NCBI GenBank assembly: GCA_964304625.1
Contig: OZ199838.1
Location: forward strand, 4,241,354-4,305,353
Direction of reading: 5' to 3'
Source of the DNA: Kudoa neothunni
Taxonomy: Eukaryota; Animalia; Cnidaria
Length of the DNA: 64,000 nucleotides
Shown here: in pieces, positions 42,706-57,361 of the stretch
How positions within the stretch are numbered: position 1 is the stretch's first letter
Layout of the letters: every line of letters starts with the position of its first letter
The notes under the pieces: generated by a model
Told to the model about the DNA's origin: nothing
What the model saw: the letters and a program-made list of their open reading frames with translations, nothing else
The model's database searches: none
Program-made: the position numbers and the translations under genes

Positions 42706-44845
42706 ATCAGTTCGTTTCTGTCGATATTGACCCCGTATAGGTCTCATCTGAGACAATCTGAACTGATTCCGAGTTGGACGATTGAATTAATTGGCTTTCA
42801 ACTCGTACAATCGATTTGTATTTGGATATAATATTGTGGATAACATTCTCTTTTCTTCTTGTGGCATGTTTTGGAAACTACGATTGAGAATACAATGATG
42901 ATGATTGTTCTTGTTCAATGGGTGGGCCAAATAGAAATGCTTATTGGTATGAATAACATAGAAGTGGGTCAATGATTCAATGTAGTGCTCTTTGAACTGA
43001 GCATCTTTATTTTCGTCATAGCTACTACGACTCCTATTAGAGGCTCTCGTTGGTGATGAGCCTATTTTGAATTTATAAGGATATACAATGTTGACAGGGA
43101 GTTTATTTTCATTGCTTATCGATAAAAATGATATTGCAACCTTATACAGGCTAGCAAATGCACTAGATATTACAACATGGTCTATTTTTTCTAATTTTTT
43201 CAAATCGGTGAAACAGTGCAACCATTCTTGGTAACTAACATAGTCAGAGCTGTCCTTTCTTTGGAAACAATTAAATAACAACCTAAAATCACAAACTTTA
43301 AACATGACATGATAACTCATTAAATTTAGCCATATGTTTATTGTGTCTAACCAGCATCAAACGCTGTATAATTTAACGAAAATCATTTTTTTAGTTAGAA
43401 ATCATGTAATTATTAAACAAATCTATATGAACCTACAGATAATATTCTTTATTTCTAATTATCTCTTGTGTCAGCGTTTCAGTCATATTAGTGGGATTGA
43501 TAATTAAGGAATAATGATGAATTATTTCATAAATCATTTGGAGAGTAGCAATAATTCCTTTTGCCTGAAATCATGAGATTCCGATGAGATATGATTGGTG
43601 TTAGTCCAAATCAGGGTAGTATTTGGCTTTTATATAGGTTTAAATTTATTTCTTTGATAATATGATTTATTTGGTAACGTGAGGTTTCAATATAAGACGT
43701 GGGTTCTTCTTGAATCTTACAGCCCGGAGGTACAATCTCTGGAGCTCCATTTTTTGGTTTGGAGTTTTTCTCATCAAAATCAATCACATTTTTAACGGTT
43801 GTTATATAGTAGCCACCATCAGAAATATTACTTTCAAGAAGACTAAACAGAAATGTGAAATCAGAATATCCAGGATAGGACTTATAGCATTCCACAAAAT
43901 CGTCCCCATTGACTTGTAGAAACTTGTGTGAACCATATTTATTTTTTAGGTGGGAACAAAATGATATCAGTGTCAAGGTAATCACACTCACCAAATGCAA
44001 TAACATAAGGGGAGTAGTTGGGAAGTGCCATCGACAAATCACATGAAAACATCACGTCCAATGTCCTCATAAGTCTAATATATGTAGAATTAGCAGACAA
44101 ACAGAGCGCGAGTTGTACTCACTTGGCGGGCAATACACACAAAAATGAAGTCTGAAAGAATTTCATTTCTCCAATCCACATTCCCATTAATATCGATAGA
44201 ACAGCACCAACAATGAATGTTAAAAAAGTTTTATATTCGAAGTACATTCTAATAAAAACTTTTATCCAGAAGCATATGTTTGAGACGAAGCTGAAGAAAC
44301 TAAATATTTTTAGTAAGTCTAAGCGAATAACCTCATCTTTGAGTTTTGAATGAGATTAATCATAACTAAAAAATTACTATGATTTCATTTCGTTCTTTTT
44401 CAGTGTACAAAAATTTTCTATGGAATTTGTTTTTGTTGATGCAAATAGTTTCATCAAGGGAAGATATATCCTGACAAACACTCATAAATGATAGAATTTT
44501 CCTTTTCACACCAGGAATTTCTCTCCAAGCAGAGTGGGAGAAAAACAACGACAACACCGTCACCATTGAACAATATGGAAAGTAGATCAAAAGATAAATT
44601 TTAGTGTAGAATTTGCATTTCGAGGACACATAACTCAATTCTGAGGTTGCAAAGTCGATTGTGTCATTGTAAGCAGGCACACACAAGGCTTGTATGCCCT
44701 CCAACCAAAATTGAACGTACACAACCGCACTACTCAACGCCATCACATACAAAATAATATCAAATACGAATTCCCACGCAAATTTCAAATTCCTGTAGCC
44801 TTTGCTTTCTTTCTTTAACGCGATTAACATTGCCTGAAACACCAT
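42706..44845 (-). pseudogene. LRRC8/pannexin-like pore domain + OTU-like domain, paralog A (frameshifted)
   Basis: MVFQAML...LKFAWEFVFD, CVP, YVSSKC, YFPY, WREIP..KRKI.SF, FSCD, YPGYSDFTF. Introns 44377-44300, 44122-44075 and 43436-43283. +1 frameshifts at A5 (44254-44258) and G4 (44009-44012), with more near 43620-43570. The 3' end is uncertain (42787 or ~42706). Confidence 0.75.
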
Positions 44846-45498
44846 TTTGAATTTGAGATAATCTTTTTTCGCAATTGCCCACTGTGTTTGACTCTGATTA
44901 GGATAACAACTTACTAATAAGGTTAGACGATTCATTGACTGATCGGCTGATTAGTATACTTCATCAGTTTACTAATTAAGATAATTTCCACCAAAACATA
45001 ATTTTAAACATATATTTTTTGTCAAGGTTTCCATCATTATCAAACCATGTTTTTCAACTTTTACAAAGTTGACACATTTTCAAAAATTAATAAAATTACT
45101 ATTCAAATTTCTAAAACTTATCAGATCATTTGCGTTTTTTAAAATGTTAGACATACGGAATTTTGTCTCTATGTTGTCTCAGAAGGTTAACCATTGTCAA
45201 CCCTATTTTTAATGCTATAAATGTAATTTCAAGTATGAGCCATTTCCAACGCCTAAAATCAAAACAAAAACTACTCGCCAAAATTAATTGTACATTATTC
45301 TCGAAAAAAGTCGCCATTCTTACAAAATTTTAAATAAAGCCACTTAGATAAAGAAAATGAATATAGTTATTAATAAAAATATGTTAAATTATATTTTACA
45401 ATATTATAAAAAAGTAGTTATTACAACAAGTTAATCCACACTATGTTGTTCGGATAAAGAAAAACGTCGGCAGGACATGCATGCATCGTCTATTGTCT

Positions 45499-47642
45499 CT
45501 ATAAATCACTAATATCATAAGAATTCCAATCGAAGGTCACGAAAAGAGAGGTGGTTTTTTGGGGCCTTTTCACAAAGGCAGATCTTCTTTTCACATTGTA
45601 ACTATTAGTAACTGATTTTATCTTCTTTTTGTATTTATAAAGTAGATTTCTTAGTTGATGTTTTTCTTGTTCGGTGTAGTTGTCAAAGGTCTTATCGAAA
45701 ATCGTATCACGACTTTGATTATCGATGGTTCTTTTCAATACGAAATAAATATTTTTAGCTTTGACAACATAAAAATGGCGAGTATTAGTATAAGAAACGT
45801 TATCACATTCATCTTCACTATCGGCAATAGTGTACGGATGGAAAATTTCAACTGCGTTTCTCTCACATTCATTTAACGCAATTACCGTGATAGTTGCACG
45901 GTAAATGTTACAAAATGCAGACAGCACGACAAAATAGCAGAAATGAACCAACTGATCTATCGAGATAATCATTTTGTACCATTGTTTGGGGTAAATAGGT
46001 TCTTTTTTATATTTTTTAATCCTCAGACAGTTGGCATATAACCTAAATTACATAAAAAACTATCATCCAATTTACCATACACGAATTAATATTAAACAGA
46101 AAAAATTATTGTTAATCGTCACACACATATAATTTTCGTACAGTAAATATTCTTTTTGTTTAATAATTTCATTTTTTATCCGTTCAACCAACATAGTGCA
46201 ATCATCAATCACGAATAATGGTTCTATGGTATGATACAGCCCCATAAGACAACTAGTCAGACTCCAACCATCAGAATATTTTTGTGAGAATTCATCACCC
46301 GCAACCATCGGCTGAGGTGTGTCTTCGAAAGAGAACTTAGATAGTAACTCTATGTAAAAATTTTTTAGGTCTGCTGCGCTTATAAATTGAAGAGAATCGT
46401 CCTCATCACTATCAATATCAATTCCAATAGTATCATGAGAAGATAGGTTATCATCCTCAAAATCAGAAGAGTGACTAGAATGGATTGTTAATGTAGACTG
46501 AGGTTGACACAATGAGTAGTTGCTGGACGGATTATCAAACCTGATCATATTATTGCTGTCTTTCAACAACATCACTTTCATAAAGTTGTGAAGAAGCAAA
46601 CCACCATCGTAAACGTTGCTGTGAATTAAAGCAAACATAAACATGATATCATTGAATCCGGGGTAGGATTTGAATTCTTCAATCAACTCGCTAGCGTCTA
46701 CTGTTGTTATTGGATAAGGATGAAAGTAATGGCTCAAAAGAGCTCTCACCGTCAGAATTAGTATGATACAATATATCAACCAATGGAATAGCATGATAGC
46801 ATATGTTGGCAAAGCTGATGACACGTCGCAACTAAATTGATTATCGTATTTGTTGTAGTATCTAGAAAAATAAGGTGATAGTTGGAAGGTCATATCGCAA
46901 CTATTATTAGTTCAAAATGAAAATACTTTGCTTCAATTTTACAACTGAATGTCGATTGTAAGAAAGAAAGCGTGTATAGGAATGCAGAGATAATCACCAC
47001 AAACAACACGCACAACAAGGATGTAAAAGTTGTTTTGAAAATGTAATATTTGGAAAGGCTACTTTTCTCTAGCAGAAGATGAAACATTTTTAATTGGATG
47101 TGCTAACATTGAAAGAATAATTGTTAGTGGTTTCGAACAGTTTATTTGTAAAAAAACTGAAATACCTTAACTAGGTTGCACTGTTTTTGGCTAAAACTAA
47201 AATTTCGTAATAAACCACGATTCACCTCATCTCGCTCATAAAACACTTGATCCAACGACATCACTTCCAAACACAACGTTCCAAACAAATTGATTTTTGA
47301 CTGAATCCATGGGATTTCTTTCCAGAAAAAATGGGCCATCGTCAACAACAACACTGAAGCAGCAGAAAAATATGGAAAATATATCAAAAGTGCTATTCTG
47401 TACTTTAACTTGCAGCACGATGCAACAAATAACATCTCAAAGGTTTCCACCAACTCCAATGGACCGTACGAGGGCACACACCAGACTCGATTGCCCTCAA
47501 AAATATAATTCAAATACAACAATGAGCTGCATATTATAAGCAAGATTAAAAAGCTATCCACAACCCATTCCCAGGAAAATCTCATTCTTTTAAATGAACC
47601 ATCTGCACTAGAGATGGATTTTAGCATAGCAGCAAAAATCAT
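45499..47642 (-). CDS. LRRC8/pannexin-like pore domain + OTU-like domain, paralog B (intact, 4 exons)
   Basis: Introns 47165-47103, 46926-46901 (26 nt) and 46126-46043 join the four ORFs in frame. Motifs FSWEWVVD, WCVP, VASCC, YFPY, FFWKEIP...SKI..F, FSC..., FSCD and YPGFNDIMFMFALI. OTU-like SDGWSLTSCL...IKNEIIKQKE...LSAFCNIYRATITVI. Confidence 0.8.
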
Positions 47643-49009
47643 GGCTCCAACTTTCTTGATTAATGTTTTATTTTCTAAATTCAATAAAAAAATATACAGC
47701 ATAATTTTAATATTCATACCAAAAACAACTGTTCTTACCTTATCAAATATTATTCACAAAAGGTTCATTTAACCAACACATCCAATGGCAGGTAGTTTCA
47801 ACGATTATAACCAACAAAATTTAATAGGTATATTTTTAAATAACGCTATAGTTCAGTTGAGATTTCAATTTAACGGTTATCTAATAAATTCCACTATTTA
47901 TTCACTCTAATGGTATTAGTAAGCTGCGCAATTCCCGTTTTGAATGATTGTTACACGTAATGCATATAGGAGATTTGCCATCTTGACATATTCTCACCAC
48001 GCATTTAACACATTATTAAATATGATAATGTTGATCAACGATTTTAATGACACAAGCGAGACTCTTAGATGGAATTAAACAATTTATTTTTCTTATCTTT
48101 TTCTGTTTGCTGCATTCATTCACAGTAACGGGTGCATCGTTCATATTTCCGACAAAAATTTAGCTTGGTAACAATATCATTTATCGCCTGAGCGAAATCA
48201 TGATTGATTTTAGTCCGGATAAAAATTACATTGTATTTATGCTTCATACACATTAGAGTAGATTTCTAAATTTCCTTAGAGAAAAACCATTCCTACTCAT
48301 GTCGCAACTTCAGTAGGATGTAAATTATTTAATCGAATCCTGATTTAATTCGGCATTTTCATATTACATTAGCGCGAACTTCCGGTATCGTCAAAGATTT
48401 GGAATATTTTGCATTAAATATTCTTAAAGTCATTTAAAAATATTATTTAGCCCTAGAACTAGTTAAACGATAAGATTTTAAGTATCACTTCTAGCATTTC
48501 TGACTAGCGAAATTAAAATTAAGATATTTCGGGAAATTGTAAAAATTAAAAAATTGTATAACTAGATGAAAATTTAGGAAAATTAATTTTTATAGGAAAA
48601 ATTAATGTCGAAATTCCGGCATAAACTAAAATACATTATTTATAACAAACTGCTGCACAACCTCTAGATACCAATCTAAATAATTTATATAATTAGATCG
48701 AGTAAAAATACAACGTCTCCATTGGATTTATTCGTGTCAGTTCAGTTAAGGGGCGGCCTCAATGGAGTCGAAAGATACAGCCCTAATATTATAAGAAGGA
48801 ATCGTAATTTCCGATGTTGATTTTTAAAAAATTCGACGGCTAAAATCGCTTGTAATCGAACACTACGATCCCTAATTATAAGAATTTTTTCTATGTGAAA
48901 ATCATAAACAACAGCGGTTCATAATTAATTAGGTAGACGTGAATCTCTCTGTATATTTAAAACAAATATTGAAACTTTAGAGATGTACCTATCTAGTAAA
49001 GTATATTAA

Positions 49010-49888
49010 CCTTCGAAGTAGTTGAAAAATTTACACTCTTCTAATAAAAATGGGCAGAAATCTACCCCACTTTATTATTTGATAGAACTGTGTCGATTAA
49101 AATTCAGCATTGACTGACAAGATATGAGGAAAATTCATCGAGTAAATTTTGAATAAATGACTAATTATTAAGGTTATATCTCTACATGCATGCGCAAATA
49201 TTAACATTGTTACATTTCTACGGAGTACGATTGTATTTATAGGTGTATTTCTGTGTATTTTTAGTTGTAACATTTAATTCAAATTTTAGAACAGCTGCCA
49301 ATTAATTTATTTAAAAAACCCAGCGTATAACTGCGCCGAAAAACACATAATGATGGAATACAGTGCTTATTTCACAAAAAAGTTATCATATATGTTTTTA
49401 AACTCTTTCCAAAACATAACATTTGTCAAAATATTGAACAATTATATCATGTGGCTTTTTAATGCTCTCTACAACGTAGAAATAAGCAAATTGATAAAAA
49501 GTCATCGTATTTTGAATAATTGGTATAAAAATAACGAGAGAATGAGGAGCTATCGTTGTATGTTGGTGTGGAACGACACGCTTATATCGATGTTGCGCAT
49601 GCGGACTAGCATCTCTTGTACAGTGTTTTGTTATTTATTCATTATTTACTCGATAAAATTTCCGTAAATTTTTAAAAATCACATGTATCAATATTTGAAA
49701 TCGTTTTATGAAAGAAGAATGTGGGGTAGATTTCTACTCCAATTTTATTTGGAAGGTGTTTTTACACTAACTTTTTTGGTATAAAGCAAACAAAAATTTC
49801 AATTCGTTTTTCTGAAAGCTTTTATACGCTATAATATTGTTGGCAAAATTCACTTGGTGTAGAATTATATCCCATTTTATTTAGAAGG
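49010..49888. mobile_element. Non-autonomous piggyBac derivative of the PB2 family
   Basis: TTAA on both sides. The left ~60 bp resembles 25139-25198. The right end TTTAGAAGG|TTAA and subterminal GGGGTAGATTTCTACTCC match PB2. Confidence 0.85.
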
Positions 49889-49953
49889 TTAAAGTCCTAG
49901 CCTAAGGAGTATATTTACAGCCACACCAAAATGAATATATATATATATATATA

Positions 49954-51050
49954 CTAGCGCAAATGTCCCGCTTCACGTAGGCTTTCTTGTCCGCTACGCA
50001 GATTTAAGCCTTGAGTAGGTCAAAGTTATTTTAAGTTCAAAGTAAATTATAATTATCTTATCGTCCTTACTACTACAATTTTTATCGAAATGACCAGCAA
50101 TAACCCAACCATCTTCATATTCTTCTTTATTGGAGCTTATTTACATTTATAAATCATAAGTTCTTACAACTCATGTGGCGTTTAACCCTAGAAAGCTCGC
50201 CAAAAATAGTTACACAAAGGCTCAGTGGATCCCCTTTTTGATCAATTTATACTTGGACCAAAAAGGGGTCCACTGGGCCTTTGTGTAACTTTTTAAAAAT
50301 CTGATAAAAAACATACATAGAATGAACAAATTTTTTTCACTCCTGTAAATATAATTACATAAAATTTATTATTTAATTTACGTAACATTAATTTTGTAGT
50401 ATAGAATGCCCCTATAATTTTATAAATATTTAATTAAATTTTGGATCAAAAAAGGACCCACCGAACTTTCTAGGGTTAATCACTCTAACTAACCCGTCGA
50501 TGAACTAACTGATCTAAAGTTAGTTAACAATGTTTCATTTAATCATAACGTGCTAACGTCATTTTATGTTTATTTAAAAAATATTTAAAACATTTTATCT
50601 TTAATTAAACGTGAACAGTAAAAATTTATTCACGTGTATTTATCTCCCTTTTAAACAACAAATCTTCGTTTACACTAAGTCCTCGCCTACACACAAACGA
50701 ATGTTGTAGATCGTCTTAAGTACGTTCAAAAGTAGAAAAGAGTAAACTTTTAAAATTTCAGTTGTATTAAAATACAGAAAATTAGAGTTATCTACGCATA
50801 TCTCTGAACCAATTAGAAAATCATGTGCAGTGGTAATCTCATTATCATCAGTTCTAATCTGCCTACAAAAAATTTACACCACCAATTCACCACTTTATGA
50901 GCAAGTAGACAATCCCGTTATATTGTTGTTGTTCATTTGATATTTTTTAAATTACACTAACAGACTCAATAAGGAGAAAAAGCCTCTATATAAGGAGAAG
51001 ATTAATGCACACATACGGACACTACTACTGTATATATATATATATATATA
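49954..51050 (-). mobile_element. Non-autonomous Helitron-like element H1
   Basis: Minus-strand 3' end GTGAAGCGGGAC...GCGCTAG|T inside (TA)n. The putative 5' end lies in the TA run at 51031-51050, followed by a GT-rich tract. Confidence 0.5.
50186..50475. mobile_element. 290-bp piggyBac MITE nested in H1
   Basis: TTAA|CCCTAGAAAGCTCG ... CGAACTTTCTAGGG|TTAA, with an internal hairpin at 50208-50290. Confidence 0.9.
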
Positions 51051-51387
51051 AATTTCTCCATTCAACATGAAAACTAATAGTTAAAATTTTCCATCACACA
51101 CCATCAACCCAAGCTGGGTATATGCGCTGGTTCCATATAAATACACTATTTAAATTAGAAACGCTTTCGTATTCAACAAAAAAAATCGGCGGCAAATCTA
51201 AAAATTCAAAAAAACATTCGAAATTTATTCATCCTCAGTAACATGTAGAATTAAGCAAGAAACATCCTCTGTAATTTTTGCACCAATGCGGCCAACCCGA
51301 ATCAGACATCCTGACAATTTTTTCCGGACAAAATCGGCAATATGAGAATTTTTGTAAATGGAAACCTCATGTTTAATTATATATATA

Positions 51388-53414
51388 CTAGCGTAAAAGC
51401 CCCGCTTCGCGAAGACTTCCTTACCCAGCCAAGTAGGCTAAAACCTGGCGCAGACTATAGTCTTTTTGATTTTTAAGTAAATAGTGCTAATGCCTAGCTT
51501 TGTCTCGTACCGTGTGCTTGAAAATTTTGACTTTTAATTTTATTTTCGAATAGAAAAATTTTACGAAAGATTTAATCAAATTAGCACGTTAAACACTGTA
51601 AATTTCCTTTTTCTTTTTTAATTGATGCATTTTAAAACTTGTCATTATTTCTGCAATGTGATGATTTCGAAAAACAAAATTACGCAAGTATTTTCAATTC
51701 AAATATAAATAAAGGTATGGAGAGAAATTAATGAGTAATTTTGAGTTTATTTTACAAATTATTGACCAAAACTATGATGACCTTAATTTTAAGAGAAATG
51801 TAATTAGCAACTAAAGTTCATTTATTCATTAAACAAAATCATCAAGTAACTTAAATAGGACGTTCAGTTTTTTTCAAAATTTTGCGATAGAAATTAATCC
51901 TTCTAGTTATAAAATTTATTATTAGTCTACAAACGACAAAAATAATAAAATCGACCTAAGATGCGTTAGAAATAAAAATATTAATTGTTACTCCTTTTTT
52001 TCAATTTTGTTAAAGAAGTTAATGATGTTTTAAAAAGCTGTGAGCGATAACTTACGTATTCACTATTTTAACATAATTCTCCAATTTTTAAATAAGTAGA
52101 ACCTTTTTTAACAAAAATACTTACTAGTTCAAAAATATACAAATTTAATTAATAAAATACGATTAAATCCAAAATATAAAGGAGTTTTTGGTTTGAAAAA
52201 TTACAGTAATGCTTAAATATCAACTGGTTTTCTCGAAGGAGCGCACCCTTTCAAAAACAACGTACTGTTTGATTGCCCTAAAAAAATTTCTTTGTATTGA
52301 ACTATTCTTAGATTAACGAAAACTTTGCGAAAATATTGGTTAGATCGAATAGACCAATAATTTCTTATTAACTTACATGACACGTATTGAGATTGAGAGG
52401 AGACTTTATTTTGTGAAAAAGTAATCGTGAATATAAATTCATAAACTACGTATAGAATATGGTGTCGCATAGTTTCATTCAGCTTTTATTTCATAATGAA
52501 TTATTTTTAACGAAAATAATTATATATTGATTTGAATATTAAATCTAAGGTCTGGAGTAAGGAATAATTAGGTTACTAAGAACTTAAACATTATTTTAAA
52601 AATTACCTCATCAAATATAGGAACTTATTGAATTAGTTATATCAGCAGTTTTTCAAGAAAGTTTAGGAAAACGAAAATATGAGTAAAAACTTATCGAAAG
52701 ACAAATATAGTTTCAATCTCAATCGATATATTTGATAAAAAGAAATTTTCACATCTCAGGAATTCCAATGGAGCATAACTTTCATTTAAGAAATTATCAC
52801 AAAAATTTTAATATTTGAAAACTCTACACATATCAGATCCTACATCGTTTTTAGAATGCGTATAGAGACCAAAATTATTCCAAAGTGGCAACAACTTTAA
52901 CCCCAAATTATGTGTCTTATTTAAAATGATCATAATCTATTTTGATTAACTATATCTATAAAGCTTGTAAAGAGGAAAAATATCCCAAATAACTTATTTA
53001 TGCTCCAAATTTGAAGGGAAATGCAACAATTCTTGTAAATGTGACGTTAATAGTTTTATTTATCTTAAAATTACTCCTAACAGACATATGTAAAATTTTT
53101 AGAACATTCTATTCCATAATTAAGAGACTCTTTCTATATATAATGCGAAAAATTCATTTTAATTGGTTATCACTCCGAAATAAACCAATATCAATATTAT
53201 TCAGGTACATTTAATCTGCTTATTGATACAGCCAACCAGAAAATTTCTTACTTCTGATACCGATATTTATTATGTAAGCAATTATAAGTGAACTTGCGAT
53301 TTTTTTAAAGTATCATCCATCTAAATGTATATTAAAAGTTGTATTTAAAAAAAGTTTCTCCGTGGCACATGTGTACGGCTGCAAATACACACACAGACAA
53401 CAGCCTTTATATGT
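51388..53414 (-). mobile_element. Non-autonomous Helitron-like element H2
   Basis: 3' end GCGAAGCGGGGC...ACGCTAG|T. The 5' region ATATAAAGGCTG..GTCTGTGTGTG...CACATGTG resembles the H3 5' end. Confidence 0.55.
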
Positions 53415-53417
53415 ACA

Positions 53418-54538
53418 CTAGCGCGAACTGCCAGCGTGGCTTGGGAAGATTTCGCATAGAGATGTTTATTAATAGCATTCAAAAAAGATATTAATATTTC
53501 AAATTAACCTATAAATTCAATAAAGTTAAAAAAAATTTTAAGCTTTAAATTTGAACGACTGTGAATATGAAATTTAAATTATGATCATTTCTGTGCAGTA
53601 GTCTATCAATCCCGGCGTTCATTTAAAAATTTCGAGGCCCGGCACCAAAACTAAATAATTTACCGTCAGTGTCGTATTTAATTTGCATCCCCGAATTATT
53701 TAGACCCCGTTAAAATGCTACCCTAAACGTTATTTTTGGCAGGCTCCGAAAGTTTGTGCACCACTGTTTACGTGAGAAAAATAAATAGAAGAAGATATAG
53801 AGATAGAAGAAAATAAACTTTATTACTCAAATTAATATCCTTTGGCCCTGGAAGATCTTAATGCATTTTTTCGCATAAACAGCCGCAAATCGTGTCAACT
53901 TCAACATAAAAATTTTAAGTAATTGGGTTAAATAAAAGTACAGTCATCTACATTAAATTTAATCACAGAAAATTAGACTTAGCGGGTGATTTTAACGAAA
54001 TCTACGGACACAATCCTTGCATTACAACGCATCAATCAATCTGATTACAGCGTGCACTATCAACTCGCTATTATTAATGTAAATACAGACCTTTTCTCAT
54101 ATTTTAAACCATTAATGGAACTTTAACATATATTTATCAAGTCATATACGTTCAAACTCCAGACAAAAGAGGCGTATATGCGCAAAACCCCAAATACACA
54201 CGACAACATTATATAAAAAGTCAGATAGCAGAAGTTAATCAACATTTGATAGAGCGTACAAAGGGGAAAATTAACTTCAACAGACCTTCACCATGACACA
54301 GGTCGTGTTAATCCTATTGCTGAACCCAAGTAATCCGATAAACAAACTTTGAATCGACAAAATCACCATTTTCTAAACACTTTTGAGAATATTTAATGGT
54401 GTTAAACAATTTAAAGATTTTTGAAACATTATGCTTTCTAAAAAATTTCGTAAGTGTCTCTCTATAGGGAAAAAATTTTTGTCACACATGCGCACTTGCT
54501 GACACACACGAACACTTCAGCTTTATATATATAGTAGA
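53418..54538 (-). mobile_element. Non-autonomous Helitron-like element H3
   Basis: Canonical termini on the minus strand: A|TCTACTATATATATAAAGCTG ... GCCACGCTGGC...GCGCTAG|T. Confidence 0.6.
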
Positions 54539-55308
54539 TAGATATATGTATATCAAGACTAACATTTGTTTATAGAGTATAAGGAAGAATCTTAACTTAA
54601 GATGGTTATCGCTCTCAATAATACTTATTTTAATCCTTTTATTTAATCGACTAATCCGTTCAACAGATTTAACAGATTTAACACCTATAAAATCTTTTTT
54701 TATAAATGCTTTTTGAGCTTATGGGGACTTTAAAAGAATTGAAAGAATTGTCACAATATTAAAAAGCATTAAAAATACCAAAAATAGCTCTCTTTCTTTA
54801 AGTAAGGTGTTGGCGCTTGCGCGATTTTTGCAACCAAATTTATTTTCACTGTAGATTCGTGTGTATGTATGTATATATAGATAATATCTAATCAAATACA
54901 TTAATGTTTGTAAATACTTTTTAATTTTTAATTTCACGTTTAGAAAAATTAATTCAAAACAAATTTATTATGATTATTATTTTTGGCTCAATAAATAATT
55001 TTATTTTTAAACTTTTATCAGTATAATTTTGCTCATACGCACTTATTGATCTGATTTATATGTAAAACCTATTGCATTCGAAAGTTTTAAAAGAAATTTA
55101 TTATGTTACAAAAACTGAAACACAATCGAGAAAAGATATATACTTACGTATGGACAAATAATAAAGAAATATTAGCGAGGAGGCGACCAAAGATAAGAAA
55201 AAATAGAATAAATCATAAAAAAGATAGAAATGATTGTGTTCTAACTAAATTTTAAACCTATACATTTATTTCGAAATCTGATGAAATATTAAATTGGGGT
55301 TGACGATG

Positions 55309-57361
55309 TCATTGTTCCTTTGAATTGGAACTGGCTTCAGACGATAGATTTCGATAATCTATCATTAGATCCCTTCTACTTATAGCAGCTTGAATTCGAG
55401 GTACGTAGAACCCTTGGAAAGGTTTGGACGTGGTATTATTGTCATATTCATCGAGTTCACTTGAGGTGGACAGAGACGAATCGACATTTATAAGTCTGTC
55501 AAATCTTGAGAGAGGTAGAGGCGAGTCTGTGGTAATAGGAGTGACTTCGAAACGTCTCTTTTTATGTGGGGTCACAGTCTTTTCTGGTTGTTCAGGTTTT
55601 TTGATGGCTCTCACAGCAACACTTTGGTTGGTTGCAACACTCCTGATGGCCAATTTTCTAAGAAGCTTTCTTTCAGTTGGTTGTAACGCATAGTTTAGCC
55701 GGGTTTCCAACGCTAATTCGGAAGGATCAGGGAAACTCTCGGTGACATGATAGTAATGCGGTTCAAGGTAGGTCATAAAAAAGACACGACCACTTCCTGG
55801 AGAATTGTGTGGAGTGAAATCATCAATTATAAATTTGGAGAGATTTCCATGGGTTTTTCCGGCATGAATAAGCAAAATTTTGGAGTTGATTACATTGCAG
55901 ATGGCAGCAATCGAAATCCAGTCTCCCCACACATTAGGGTCTCTCACGTTTGTAATTGCACGTTCCAACTTGTGGAAAGGGTATTTGACGGGATTCTTGG
56001 TGTCGAAGCCTTCAGAAGGATGGACCACGGCAATAACATCAAGTATCAATCTAAGTACAGTTTTGGAGTAATTTACACAATACCAAACTATACTTGTAAT
56101 AAGAACGATTTTTGATCAACTCATCCACAATCAGCTCTCTGATTGATTGGTTACAAAAGTGAGTCTCAAAAACGTTACATCTTTTCACTATACATTCCAA
56201 ACAACCGTAGAGGTGGCCTTTGTTTTGTTGGTTTGGTATTTCACACAATCCAAGCTCATAAATCATGTAACGCACCACTAGCACCCCCTCGTCAAATTTG
56301 TGCAAACGAGAGAGGTATCGCTCTTTCTTTTTTATCACGTCAGGATCCTCCACAAGATCAACCTTGACTTCAGACACACCCATGCCGAAATCGTTCAAAT
56401 CAACATTTTGGCATTGCATGAGCACGTATTTCAGGGCGTGAAAAGTATAAAGACCATCGGGGAAATTGGTTCGCAGTAAAGACACACAAAATACAAAATC
56501 CTGTATGCCAGGTAATCCTTTGAATCTGTCGTAATTCTCGTCACTGGAAAAAACATCCAAATTTTTCTTGAAAGACACACTGAAAAAGGTGGCATACAAT
56601 GACAGACAAAAGATGATCAGCAACGCAAACAAATGGAATATCATCACCCCAAAGATATAGACAGATGGTGATGCATCACAACTAAACATTTGGGATGATT
56701 TATTGTATGTGGGATAATCAATAGAACATGAGTAGGTGGTGTTTCCAAAATTGGACATCCATATCCACATAATGGTCAAAAATATTGATACAAAACAGAT
56801 AAAACTTAATAGTCGGCATTTTTTCAAATACATTTTCATAATGTAACTTCGCTCAAGAAACATAAAAATAATTCGTTCGTGTAACATTTTCACTTTGTCT
56901 TTATTTTGATATTCATGATCGAATGATGGCAACACACGATTACTAGGAGAATTCTTGTGAAATGCTGGCGAAAGGGTTGCTATTTGATTGAACAAGGTGC
57001 AAAATGTGCTCAATTTGGTCACAACTGAAGGTATCTTGCTCCATAATATATGAACTATCAGCAATACTCCAAAGTTGATAAGAATAAAATATGGATAGAA
57101 AATAAGTAGACGAGGTCCGAAGGTCATTTGGCATTTGGAACTGATGTATCTTGATTCACTCAAACTGAATCCACTTGTGTCATCGGAGCTAGGCACACAC
57201 ACCAATCCTCCAGCCTCAATTATTGTTTGAGACCAGGCTACAAAACCAATAGTAAACAAAGCCGCCAACGTTATCTCAATAAATAGTTCGGTCCATGATC
57301 GAAATTTCTGTACTGCAGGATGCACAGAGGTGTACTTTTGAAAGCTTGATAATGTGTCCAT
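55309..57361 (-). CDS. LRRC8/pannexin-like pore domain + OTU-like domain + Ser/Thr-rich tail, paralog C (intact, 669 aa, 2 exons)
   Basis: A 43-nt GT-AG intron (56093-56051) joins the two ORFs (YYK|LILD). FRSWTELF, LVCVP, YISSKC, FYPYF, LWSKIP...KL..F, CSID, FSCD and LPGIQDFVF follow LRRC8 order. OTU-like IRELIVDELIKN, WGDWISIAAICNVINSKILLI and EPHY. Confidence 0.85.

Follow-up and report, generated by a model that had tools for sequence, protein, structure and literature searches.

Predicted large-pore channel proteins of Kudoa neothunni with a pseudo-OTU domain in the place of the LRRC8 leucine-rich repeats

The window analysed here is a stretch of 64,000 nucleotides from the cnidarian Kudoa neothunni, a myxozoan parasite of fish (contig OZ199838.1, positions 4,241,354 to 4,305,353 of the forward strand), and the genes that concern us are the paralogues C, B and A, three co-oriented minus-strand groups of open segments that stand out in the open reading frame (ORF) lists of the window and lie in eukaryotic DNA that is rich in A+T and whose introns are very short (Table 1). 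We hold it to be almost beyond doubt that the architecture of this family is an LRRC8-type pore with a pseudo-OTU domain where LRRC8 has its leucine-rich repeats (LRRs), the two joined in one protein. When all six frames of the entire 40-Mb assembly were searched, a further paralogue, D, came to light on another contig (C2, locus L003), and the genome holds four genes of the family, the tandem C, B and A together with D. This enlarges the three-gene family described in a first-pass annotation of the same DNA; counted at 50% identity, the family comprises at least 38 clusters.

A profile (A6) that was built solely on public homologues and contains nothing of the window itself matched segments of C, B and A and no others among the 967 stop-to-stop segments of the window, colinearly and with E-values from 1.5e-102 (C exon 1) to 1.8e-4. 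The gene models were read from genomic DNA; exons were analysed singly, with full-length homologues (P0002 and others) as stand-ins, and an exon-wise alignment of A, B and C (A4) was used for motif comparison. An intron within the OTU domain sits at a homologous position in all three (the exons before it end at 56094, 46142 and 43437), following a K-E-Y-x-L or S-Y-Y-K motif, and D and the D orthologue are without it. For A, one junction, that before exon 4, is uncertain, and the canonical donor is missing after a conserved-looking segment.

Related species supply orthologues of three of these genes. Logan contig L001 (SRR31175926, another sample) carries an orthologue of C, P0001, at 70% identity, and directly after it an orthologue of B with an exon layout identical to that of B, and the arrangement of C followed by B therefore predates the two species. 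The gap between C and B is about 230 bp in the related species and 7 kb here, and about 3 kb of it here belongs to a dispersed repeat some 2-3 kb in length; the genome contains more than 40 copies of this repeat, spread over three contigs and 71-87% identical. We also note that the intron of B at 46901-46926, only 26 nt long, is bounded by GT-AG, and that the L001 orthologue has a similarly small gap (about 30 nt) in the same place. The D orthologue P0002 (69-74% identical) is a single intronless ORF of 636 aa on contig L008; it spans the first two introns of D exactly, and its tail suggests that D has one more short exon downstream. The contrast between the intronless L008:245-2155 and D at L003:250-2259, with at least two introns and probably three, means either that introns have been lost or gained between these close relatives or that L008 is a complementary DNA.

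Table 1. Features of the gene family and of its surroundings in the window (TM4, fourth transmembrane helix)
Feature	Positions in the window	Strand	Description
Paralogue C	57361-55309	minus	exon 1 plus exon 2, 669 codons
C exon 1	56094..57361	minus	422 codons plus 2 nt; ORF, profiles A6 and A8, AlphaFold2 model; pore domain residues 1 to ~325, linker, first pseudo-OTU half ~353-422
C intron	56051..56093	minus	43 nt, GT..AG; inside the pseudo-OTU domain; exons joined in frame
C exon 2	55309..56050	minus	246 codons, TGA stop 55311-55309; second pseudo-OTU half (exon residues 1 to ~104), conserved post-OTU helices, low-complexity tail
His383 codon of C	56213..56215	minus	OTU catalytic-Cys position, NKGHLY aligned to DGNCLF
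EPHYY His of C	55758-55756	minus	His-box position, exon 2
Paralogue B	45499..47642	minus	651 codons, complete open model, GT-AG introns; pore intact; OTU-like C-terminal part strongly diverged, Ser at Cys position (DGWSL)
B exons	47642-47166, 47102-46927, 46900-46142, 46042-45502	minus
B introns		minus	63, 26 and 99 nt
B stop codon	45501-45499	minus	TAG
Paralogue A	42787..44845	minus	at least four introns; TAA stop; Gly at Cys position
A exon 1	44845-44378	minus
A intron after exon 1	44377-44332	minus
A exon 2	44331-44123	minus
A intron after exon 2	44122 to ~44075	minus
A exon 3		minus	contains the frameshift
A intron before last exon	43436-43283	minus
A last exon	43282-42790	minus
CCCC run in A	44009..44012	minus	reading frame shifts +1 between the FSCD..ALPNYS stretch (conserved Cys motif of the second extracellular loop) and TM4
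Dispersed repeat	51370..54550 (approx.)		transposable-element-like; outside the gene family

The N-terminal half of these proteins resembles the LRRC8 pore in motifs, in profile and in fold. All the motifs listed in the first-pass annotation for its three co-oriented paralogues are present in A, B and C: an N-terminal F/K-x-x-W-E/W, CVP, Y/F-x-S/A-S-x-C, F/Y-PY and, further on, W-x-x-IP-x4-K-L/I-x-x-F, two more extracellular Cys and P-G-x-x-D-F/I-x-F. The pore's extracellular cysteines in C are Cys55, Cys77, Cys212 and Cys228, and the same four are invariant or nearly so in A6. Taken with A4, the secondary structure of the AlphaFold2 model of C gives an N-terminal helix, four transmembrane helices, two extracellular loops and cytoplasmic helices after TM4. 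When the A4 profile was run against the Protein Data Bank (PDB), all 26 matches at E up to 10 were LRRC8A, LRRC8C or LRRC8D (best 3.3e-11), and the alignment with LRRC8 consists of three colinear stretches that lead from the N-terminal K-P-W-W-D-V region through the P-D-V-K-N-D-F-A-F motif. P0001, compared with all PDB sequences, found LRRC8C and LRRC8D only. A match to Pfam family PF12534 (Pannexin_like) had been expected of the pore half; C alone stays below the cut-off (13.5 bits against 25), and single exons are faint but colinear. P0001 passes it (26.8 bits), and of the 32 family representatives scanned 29 have a match, the best E-value being 8.5e-16. LRR families, which the first-pass annotation had held to be absent, matched neither the exons of the four paralogues nor the 32 representatives.

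At the level of fold, the AlphaFold2 model of C residues 1-330 (predicted local distance difference test, pLDDT, 79.7; predicted TM-score, pTM, 0.78) retrieved LRRC8 chains as all of its best 50 Foldseek matches. VIA-align, a fold search independent of Foldseek that covers 48,161 chains, placed LRRC8A first with a Z of 19.4, aligning 287 residues and covering residues 15-325.

In C, the ORF of exon 1 continues unbroken from the start codon across the pore domain and into the Cys-box helix of the OTU domain, and the intronless P0002 likewise runs from pore into OTU, so at the ORF level the two halves belong together. On the strength of this continuity we rejected the alternative of two separate genes, one for the pore and one for the OTU part.

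Because D carries the whole C-terminal domain in a single exon (exon 3), it was the paralogue chosen for folding. The AlphaFold2 model of this exon has a pLDDT of 79.9, with about 90 in the core, and the Foldseek matches listed for it are OTU domains throughout, yeast Otu2 being the best (E 2.3e-6, TM-score 0.76 by target length), followed among those listed by OTUD3, OTUD5, OTUD2, OTUD1, A20, Cezanne and viral OTUs. VIA-align gave OTUD3 a Z of 14.4 (137 of 141 residues), OTUD1 14.2 and Otu2 13.8; ranks 1-32 are all of the OTU fold, with the inactive FAM105A at Z 8.2. OTU clusters also make up 27 of the 30 ESM-Atlas feature neighbours. An alignment of D with 16 full-length relatives (A8, 17 sequences) contains a conserved domain of about 180 aa followed by two conserved helices, and its profile, run over the 967 window segments, matched only the tail of C exon 1 (positions 3-109, E 2.7e-19) and C exon 2 (positions 117-263, E 4.7e-22), colinearly across the 43-nt intron. 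Searched for in the whole genome, this type of C-terminal domain is present in C and D only. The OTU-like motifs that had been pointed out in C, namely NKGHLY with His383, WGDWISIAAICNV and EPHYY, are indeed in its sequence. The Pfam OTU family (PF02338), proposed at the time as a check, answers in part: D reaches the cut-off (23.4 against 23.3), and the scores of exon 2 of the C orthologue and of C itself are 21.3 and 14.6, the latter below threshold; among the 32 representatives, 4 match at E<0.01 (best 3.4e-4) and none lies above threshold.

The active site of this domain has lost the residue on which an OTU protease depends. At the nucleophile position C and D have His, A has Gly, B has Ser and the B orthologue has Asn, and the corresponding column of A8 has no Cys in 17 sequences (H6, S3, G2, N2, T2, R1, D1). 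In the D model the place of the OTU Cys, where the helix after the strand-loop begins, is taken by His85. The earlier readings of the Cys box, NKGHLY in C, DGWSL in B and KGII in A, were reproduced by alignment, and with them the claim that a catalytic Cys is lacking. The His-box column of A8 holds His in 5 of 17 sequences; D has His there and its 74%-identical orthologue has Tyr. With no Cys nucleophile in any member and an unconserved catalytic His, the OTU domain, judged from these alignments, cannot be a cysteine protease. C and D, and some relatives, have His at both of the former catalytic positions (residues 85 and 221 of D exon 3), and this pair could be a candidate metal or ligand site.

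The first-pass annotation knew of no such architecture elsewhere, and here it has been overtaken. A word-index protein search yielded one relative only, and an exhaustive profile search of 1.84 billion representatives, used in its stead, gave 93 matches, of which 38 proteins of about 300-730 aa lie at E<1e-10, the 32 scanned representatives coming from among these; the weaker matches are true LRRC8 proteins with LRR_8, LRR_4 and LRR_14. The closest named relatives of the K. neothunni genes are proteins of the myxozoans Thelohanellus kitauei (KII71417/A0A0C2NBR2, KII69696/A0A0C2MR42, KII66798 and KII73185) and Myxobolus squamalis (KAF1743461). Further members come from Hydractinia (XP_057316428, 568 aa, annotated "LRRC8C-like"), Dendronephthya (XP_028409967, 613 aa) and Aurelia (Seg1165.1, a transcript model of 346 aa). 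These named cnidarian members match profile A4 at E 1e-71 to 1e-26, and the full-length ones share the C-terminal domain of A8; models of the Aurelia-type clade, about 350 aa long, are without the full C-terminal domain. Their database entries are automatic annotations that recognise the pore half alone; for instance, two of the four T. kitauei members are labelled "LRRC8 pannexin-like TM region domain-containing protein" in UniProt. Taxon labels are at hand for a minority of the family, so it may have members outside the Cnidaria.

A quick maximum-likelihood tree was rooted on LRR-bearing LRRC8; for A and B it contains just the exon 1 fragments, and its outgroup includes neither pannexins nor innexins. 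In it the LRR-less family forms one clade (Shimodaira-Hasegawa-like approximate likelihood ratio test, SH-aLRT, 94). The D-type joins T. kitauei KII69696, and a wider link to the Hydractinia clade is weak (SH-aLRT 80). The C-type, the A/B-type and a Thelohanellus/Myxobolus pair fall into a clade (95) whose members are all myxozoan-labelled or unlabelled, A and B being sisters. We read this as suggesting that the D-type class is shared with other cnidarians and that the C-type and the fast-evolving A/B-type occur among myxozoan-labelled sequences only.

Between C and its orthologue, identity is 73% in the pore, 56% in the linker, 69% and 57% in the two OTU halves, 36% in the post-OTU region and 32% in the tail. 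Since conservation of the OTU domain between species nearly equals that of the pore in the C and D lineages, the pseudo-OTU domain of these lineages appears to be under purifying selection.

Several observations weigh against reading the family as LRRC8-like channels with a pseudo-OTU module. Profile A8 found no significant match in the PDB (OTUD3 at E 0.86), and the sequence of D exon 3 alone found none there at all, so it is the fold, together with a borderline Pfam score and features from a language model, that carries the OTU assignment. The fold itself was modelled on D and is extended to C, as a prediction, through profile A8. The same profile misses the C-terminal parts of A and B among the window segments; their OTU-likeness is weak, resting on two hhalign matches in which small alignments of the A and B halves (A9 and A10) align colinearly with A8 (P 1.2e-4 and 1.7e-4, probability about 50%). 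A, moreover, carries a frameshift. Lastly, an inactive enzyme fold may have a structural role only, and no ligand. The OTU-type C-terminal half announced by the first-pass annotation thus stands for C, by way of the D model and A8, and is weak for A and B. From the shared intron position and the colinear hhalign matches we take the A and B domains to be homologous but degenerate.

It is possible, although we think it rather unlikely, that A and perhaps B are decaying tandem copies and that only C and D are functional genes. The +1 frameshift of A in a CCCC run and its missing canonical donor after one conserved segment would fit such decay, as would the very long branch shared by A and B (2.29 changes per site) and the escape of their C-terminal halves from the family profile. 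The exon segments of the A model are nevertheless stop-free and keep the pore motifs, and the frameshift, lying in a homopolymer, may be either an assembly error or a genuine disabling mutation. B, for its part, is open over the whole of its model (651 codons, introns bounded by GT-AG), and its orthologue in the related species has the same exon layout, with identities of 48-55% in the pore, 34-35% in the OTU-like part and 21-27% in linker and tail.

Overall, the family is probably best explained as LRRC8-like large-pore channels that bear a pseudo-OTU regulatory or binding module. On balance we expect the proteins to be channel-forming, in which case they would assemble as hexameric or heptameric large-pore channels like LRRC8 or pannexins. 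With about the same leaning, we suppose that the pseudo-OTU domain serves as a regulatory or binding module; the domains would then form a cytoplasmic ring under the pore, where LRRC8 has its gating-regulating LRR ring. Ubiquitin or a ubiquitin-like protein would be one candidate ligand, and we propose ubiquitin itself tentatively, as a choice we would not rely on. The old, distinct subunit classes suggest non-redundant subunits, which perhaps form heteromers. We also speculate, in a step that we regard as unlikely to hold, that the family embodies a second, independent design of a regulated LRRC8-type channel, in which a ring of dead OTU domains couples a cytosolic signal to gating or surface expression. 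Possible signals would be ubiquitin, a modifier of the ubiquitin-like kind or, held at the His-His pair of C and D, a metal or small ligand. If this were true, the LRRC8-type pore would predate chordates and its cytosolic sensor would have been swapped at least once.

Alternatively, the proteins might be membrane-anchored scaffolds of the endoplasmic reticulum or another organelle, with the LRRC8-like part as a non-conducting oligomeric anchor for the pseudo-OTU domain, a situation that would resemble the inactive OTULINL/FAM105A, which is membrane-associated. The match of the pseudo-OTU domain to FAM105A at Z 8.2 speaks for such a role, and so does the C-lineage residue aligned to Arg103 of LRRC8A at the pore constriction, which is non-basic (Leu, as in LRRC8C). 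We consider it improbable all the same, as the hallmarks of the LRRC8 pore, namely the K-x-W-W-D/E pore helix, the four extracellular Cys and YPY, are kept family-wide, the fold match spans residues 15-325 at Z 19.4, and conservation of the extracellular loops is not expected of a mere anchor.

That the proteins are divergent innexins or pannexins, i.e., gap-junction or hemichannel proteins, and not of the LRRC8 type is very improbable. They have the four-helix large-pore fold in common, and VIA-align brought in pannexin-1 (Z 14.2), pannexin-2 (13.4), innexin-6 (13.0) and connexins (12.7 or less) for the C pore model. LRRC8A, however, lies 5 Z units above the best pannexin, the PDB profile search returned LRRC8 exclusively, and the innexin family PF00876 has no match in any exon of A-D or in the 32 family representatives (a six-frame PF00876 search of the whole genome was blank too, but is uninformative, the control genomes being equally blank). 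Profile and fold hence place the N-terminal half nearer to LRRC8 than to pannexins and innexins, in keeping with the LRRC8-type pore of the first-pass annotation.

We give next to no credence to an active hydrolase with another nucleophile, such as Ser in B or a His-His site in C and D. It is true that His stands at the two former catalytic positions in C, D and a few relatives, and that B has Ser. Yet the nucleophile position accepts any of H, S, G, N, T, R and D, the His box is just as variable, and orthologues do not even agree (in the His box, His in D against Tyr in its orthologue; at the nucleophile position, Ser in B against Asn in its orthologue), so that no catalytic arrangement is conserved.

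Returning to the reading that we favour, that of LRRC8-like channels with a pseudo-OTU module, LRRC8/VRAC (volume-regulated anion channel) proteins are usually described as a chordate invention in which a pannexin-like pore was joined to LRRs. A review gives the emergence of the chordates as the supposed time of origin of LRRC8 (PMC9399500), and the passage of that paper that cites Abascal and Zardoya 2012 tentatively ascribes the LRRC8-like genes of Nematostella to horizontal transfer; a study of Nematostella lists automatically named "Lrrc8a" (PMC10491807). The presence of an LRRC8-type pore in named entries of three myxozoans and, beyond these, of a scyphozoan, a hydrozoan and an octocoral argues for vertical inheritance of this domain within Cnidaria. 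The papers that we searched gave no description of LRRC8 combined with an OTU domain, and what would be new here, going by the sequences, is the fusion of an LRRC8-type pore to a dead OTU domain, the relatives having so far been only automatic "LRRC8-like" or unnamed entries. Myxozoan genomes are reduced, and the retention of four copies in a reduced genome of 40 Mb suggests that the predicted channel matters to the parasite. The family represents a natural domain swap, through which the contribution of the cytosolic ring to the gating of such channels can be tested directly, and it adds a member fused to a membrane channel to the short list of OTU pseudo-enzymes.

Among known systems, OTULINL/FAM105A is likewise a catalytically dead OTU fold (Z 8.2), yet it is of a more distant OTU subtype and has no channel fusion; the likeness is conceptual and not one of close kinship. 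OTUD1, OTUD3 and Otu2 (OTUD6) have the fold in common with the family domain over nearly its whole extent (137-148 aligned residues, root-mean-square deviation 2.7-3.5 A, Z 13.8-14.4), with the strand-loop-helix "Cys box" and the terminal beta-hairpin "His box" placed alike; in contrast to them, the family domain has no catalytic Cys and a variable His, stands behind a channel domain and is followed by extra conserved helices. Pannexins and innexins share the superfamily fold and topology of the family pore (Z 13-14), but have no sequence-level match to the family and are without the cytoplasmic helices and motifs specific to LRRC8. The vertebrate LRRC8A-E proteins (VRAC/SWELL1) differ in carrying LRRs where the family has an OTU-fold domain, and at 13-16% identity to LRRC8 the family forms its own clade. 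Their pore is nonetheless homologous and colinear, from the N-terminal helix through TM1-4 and the four Cys of the two extracellular loops (EL1 and EL2) to the cytoplasmic helices that lead up to P-x-x-x-D-F-x-F, and vertebrates have several LRRC8 paralogues per genome, as K. neothunni has several genes of the present family.

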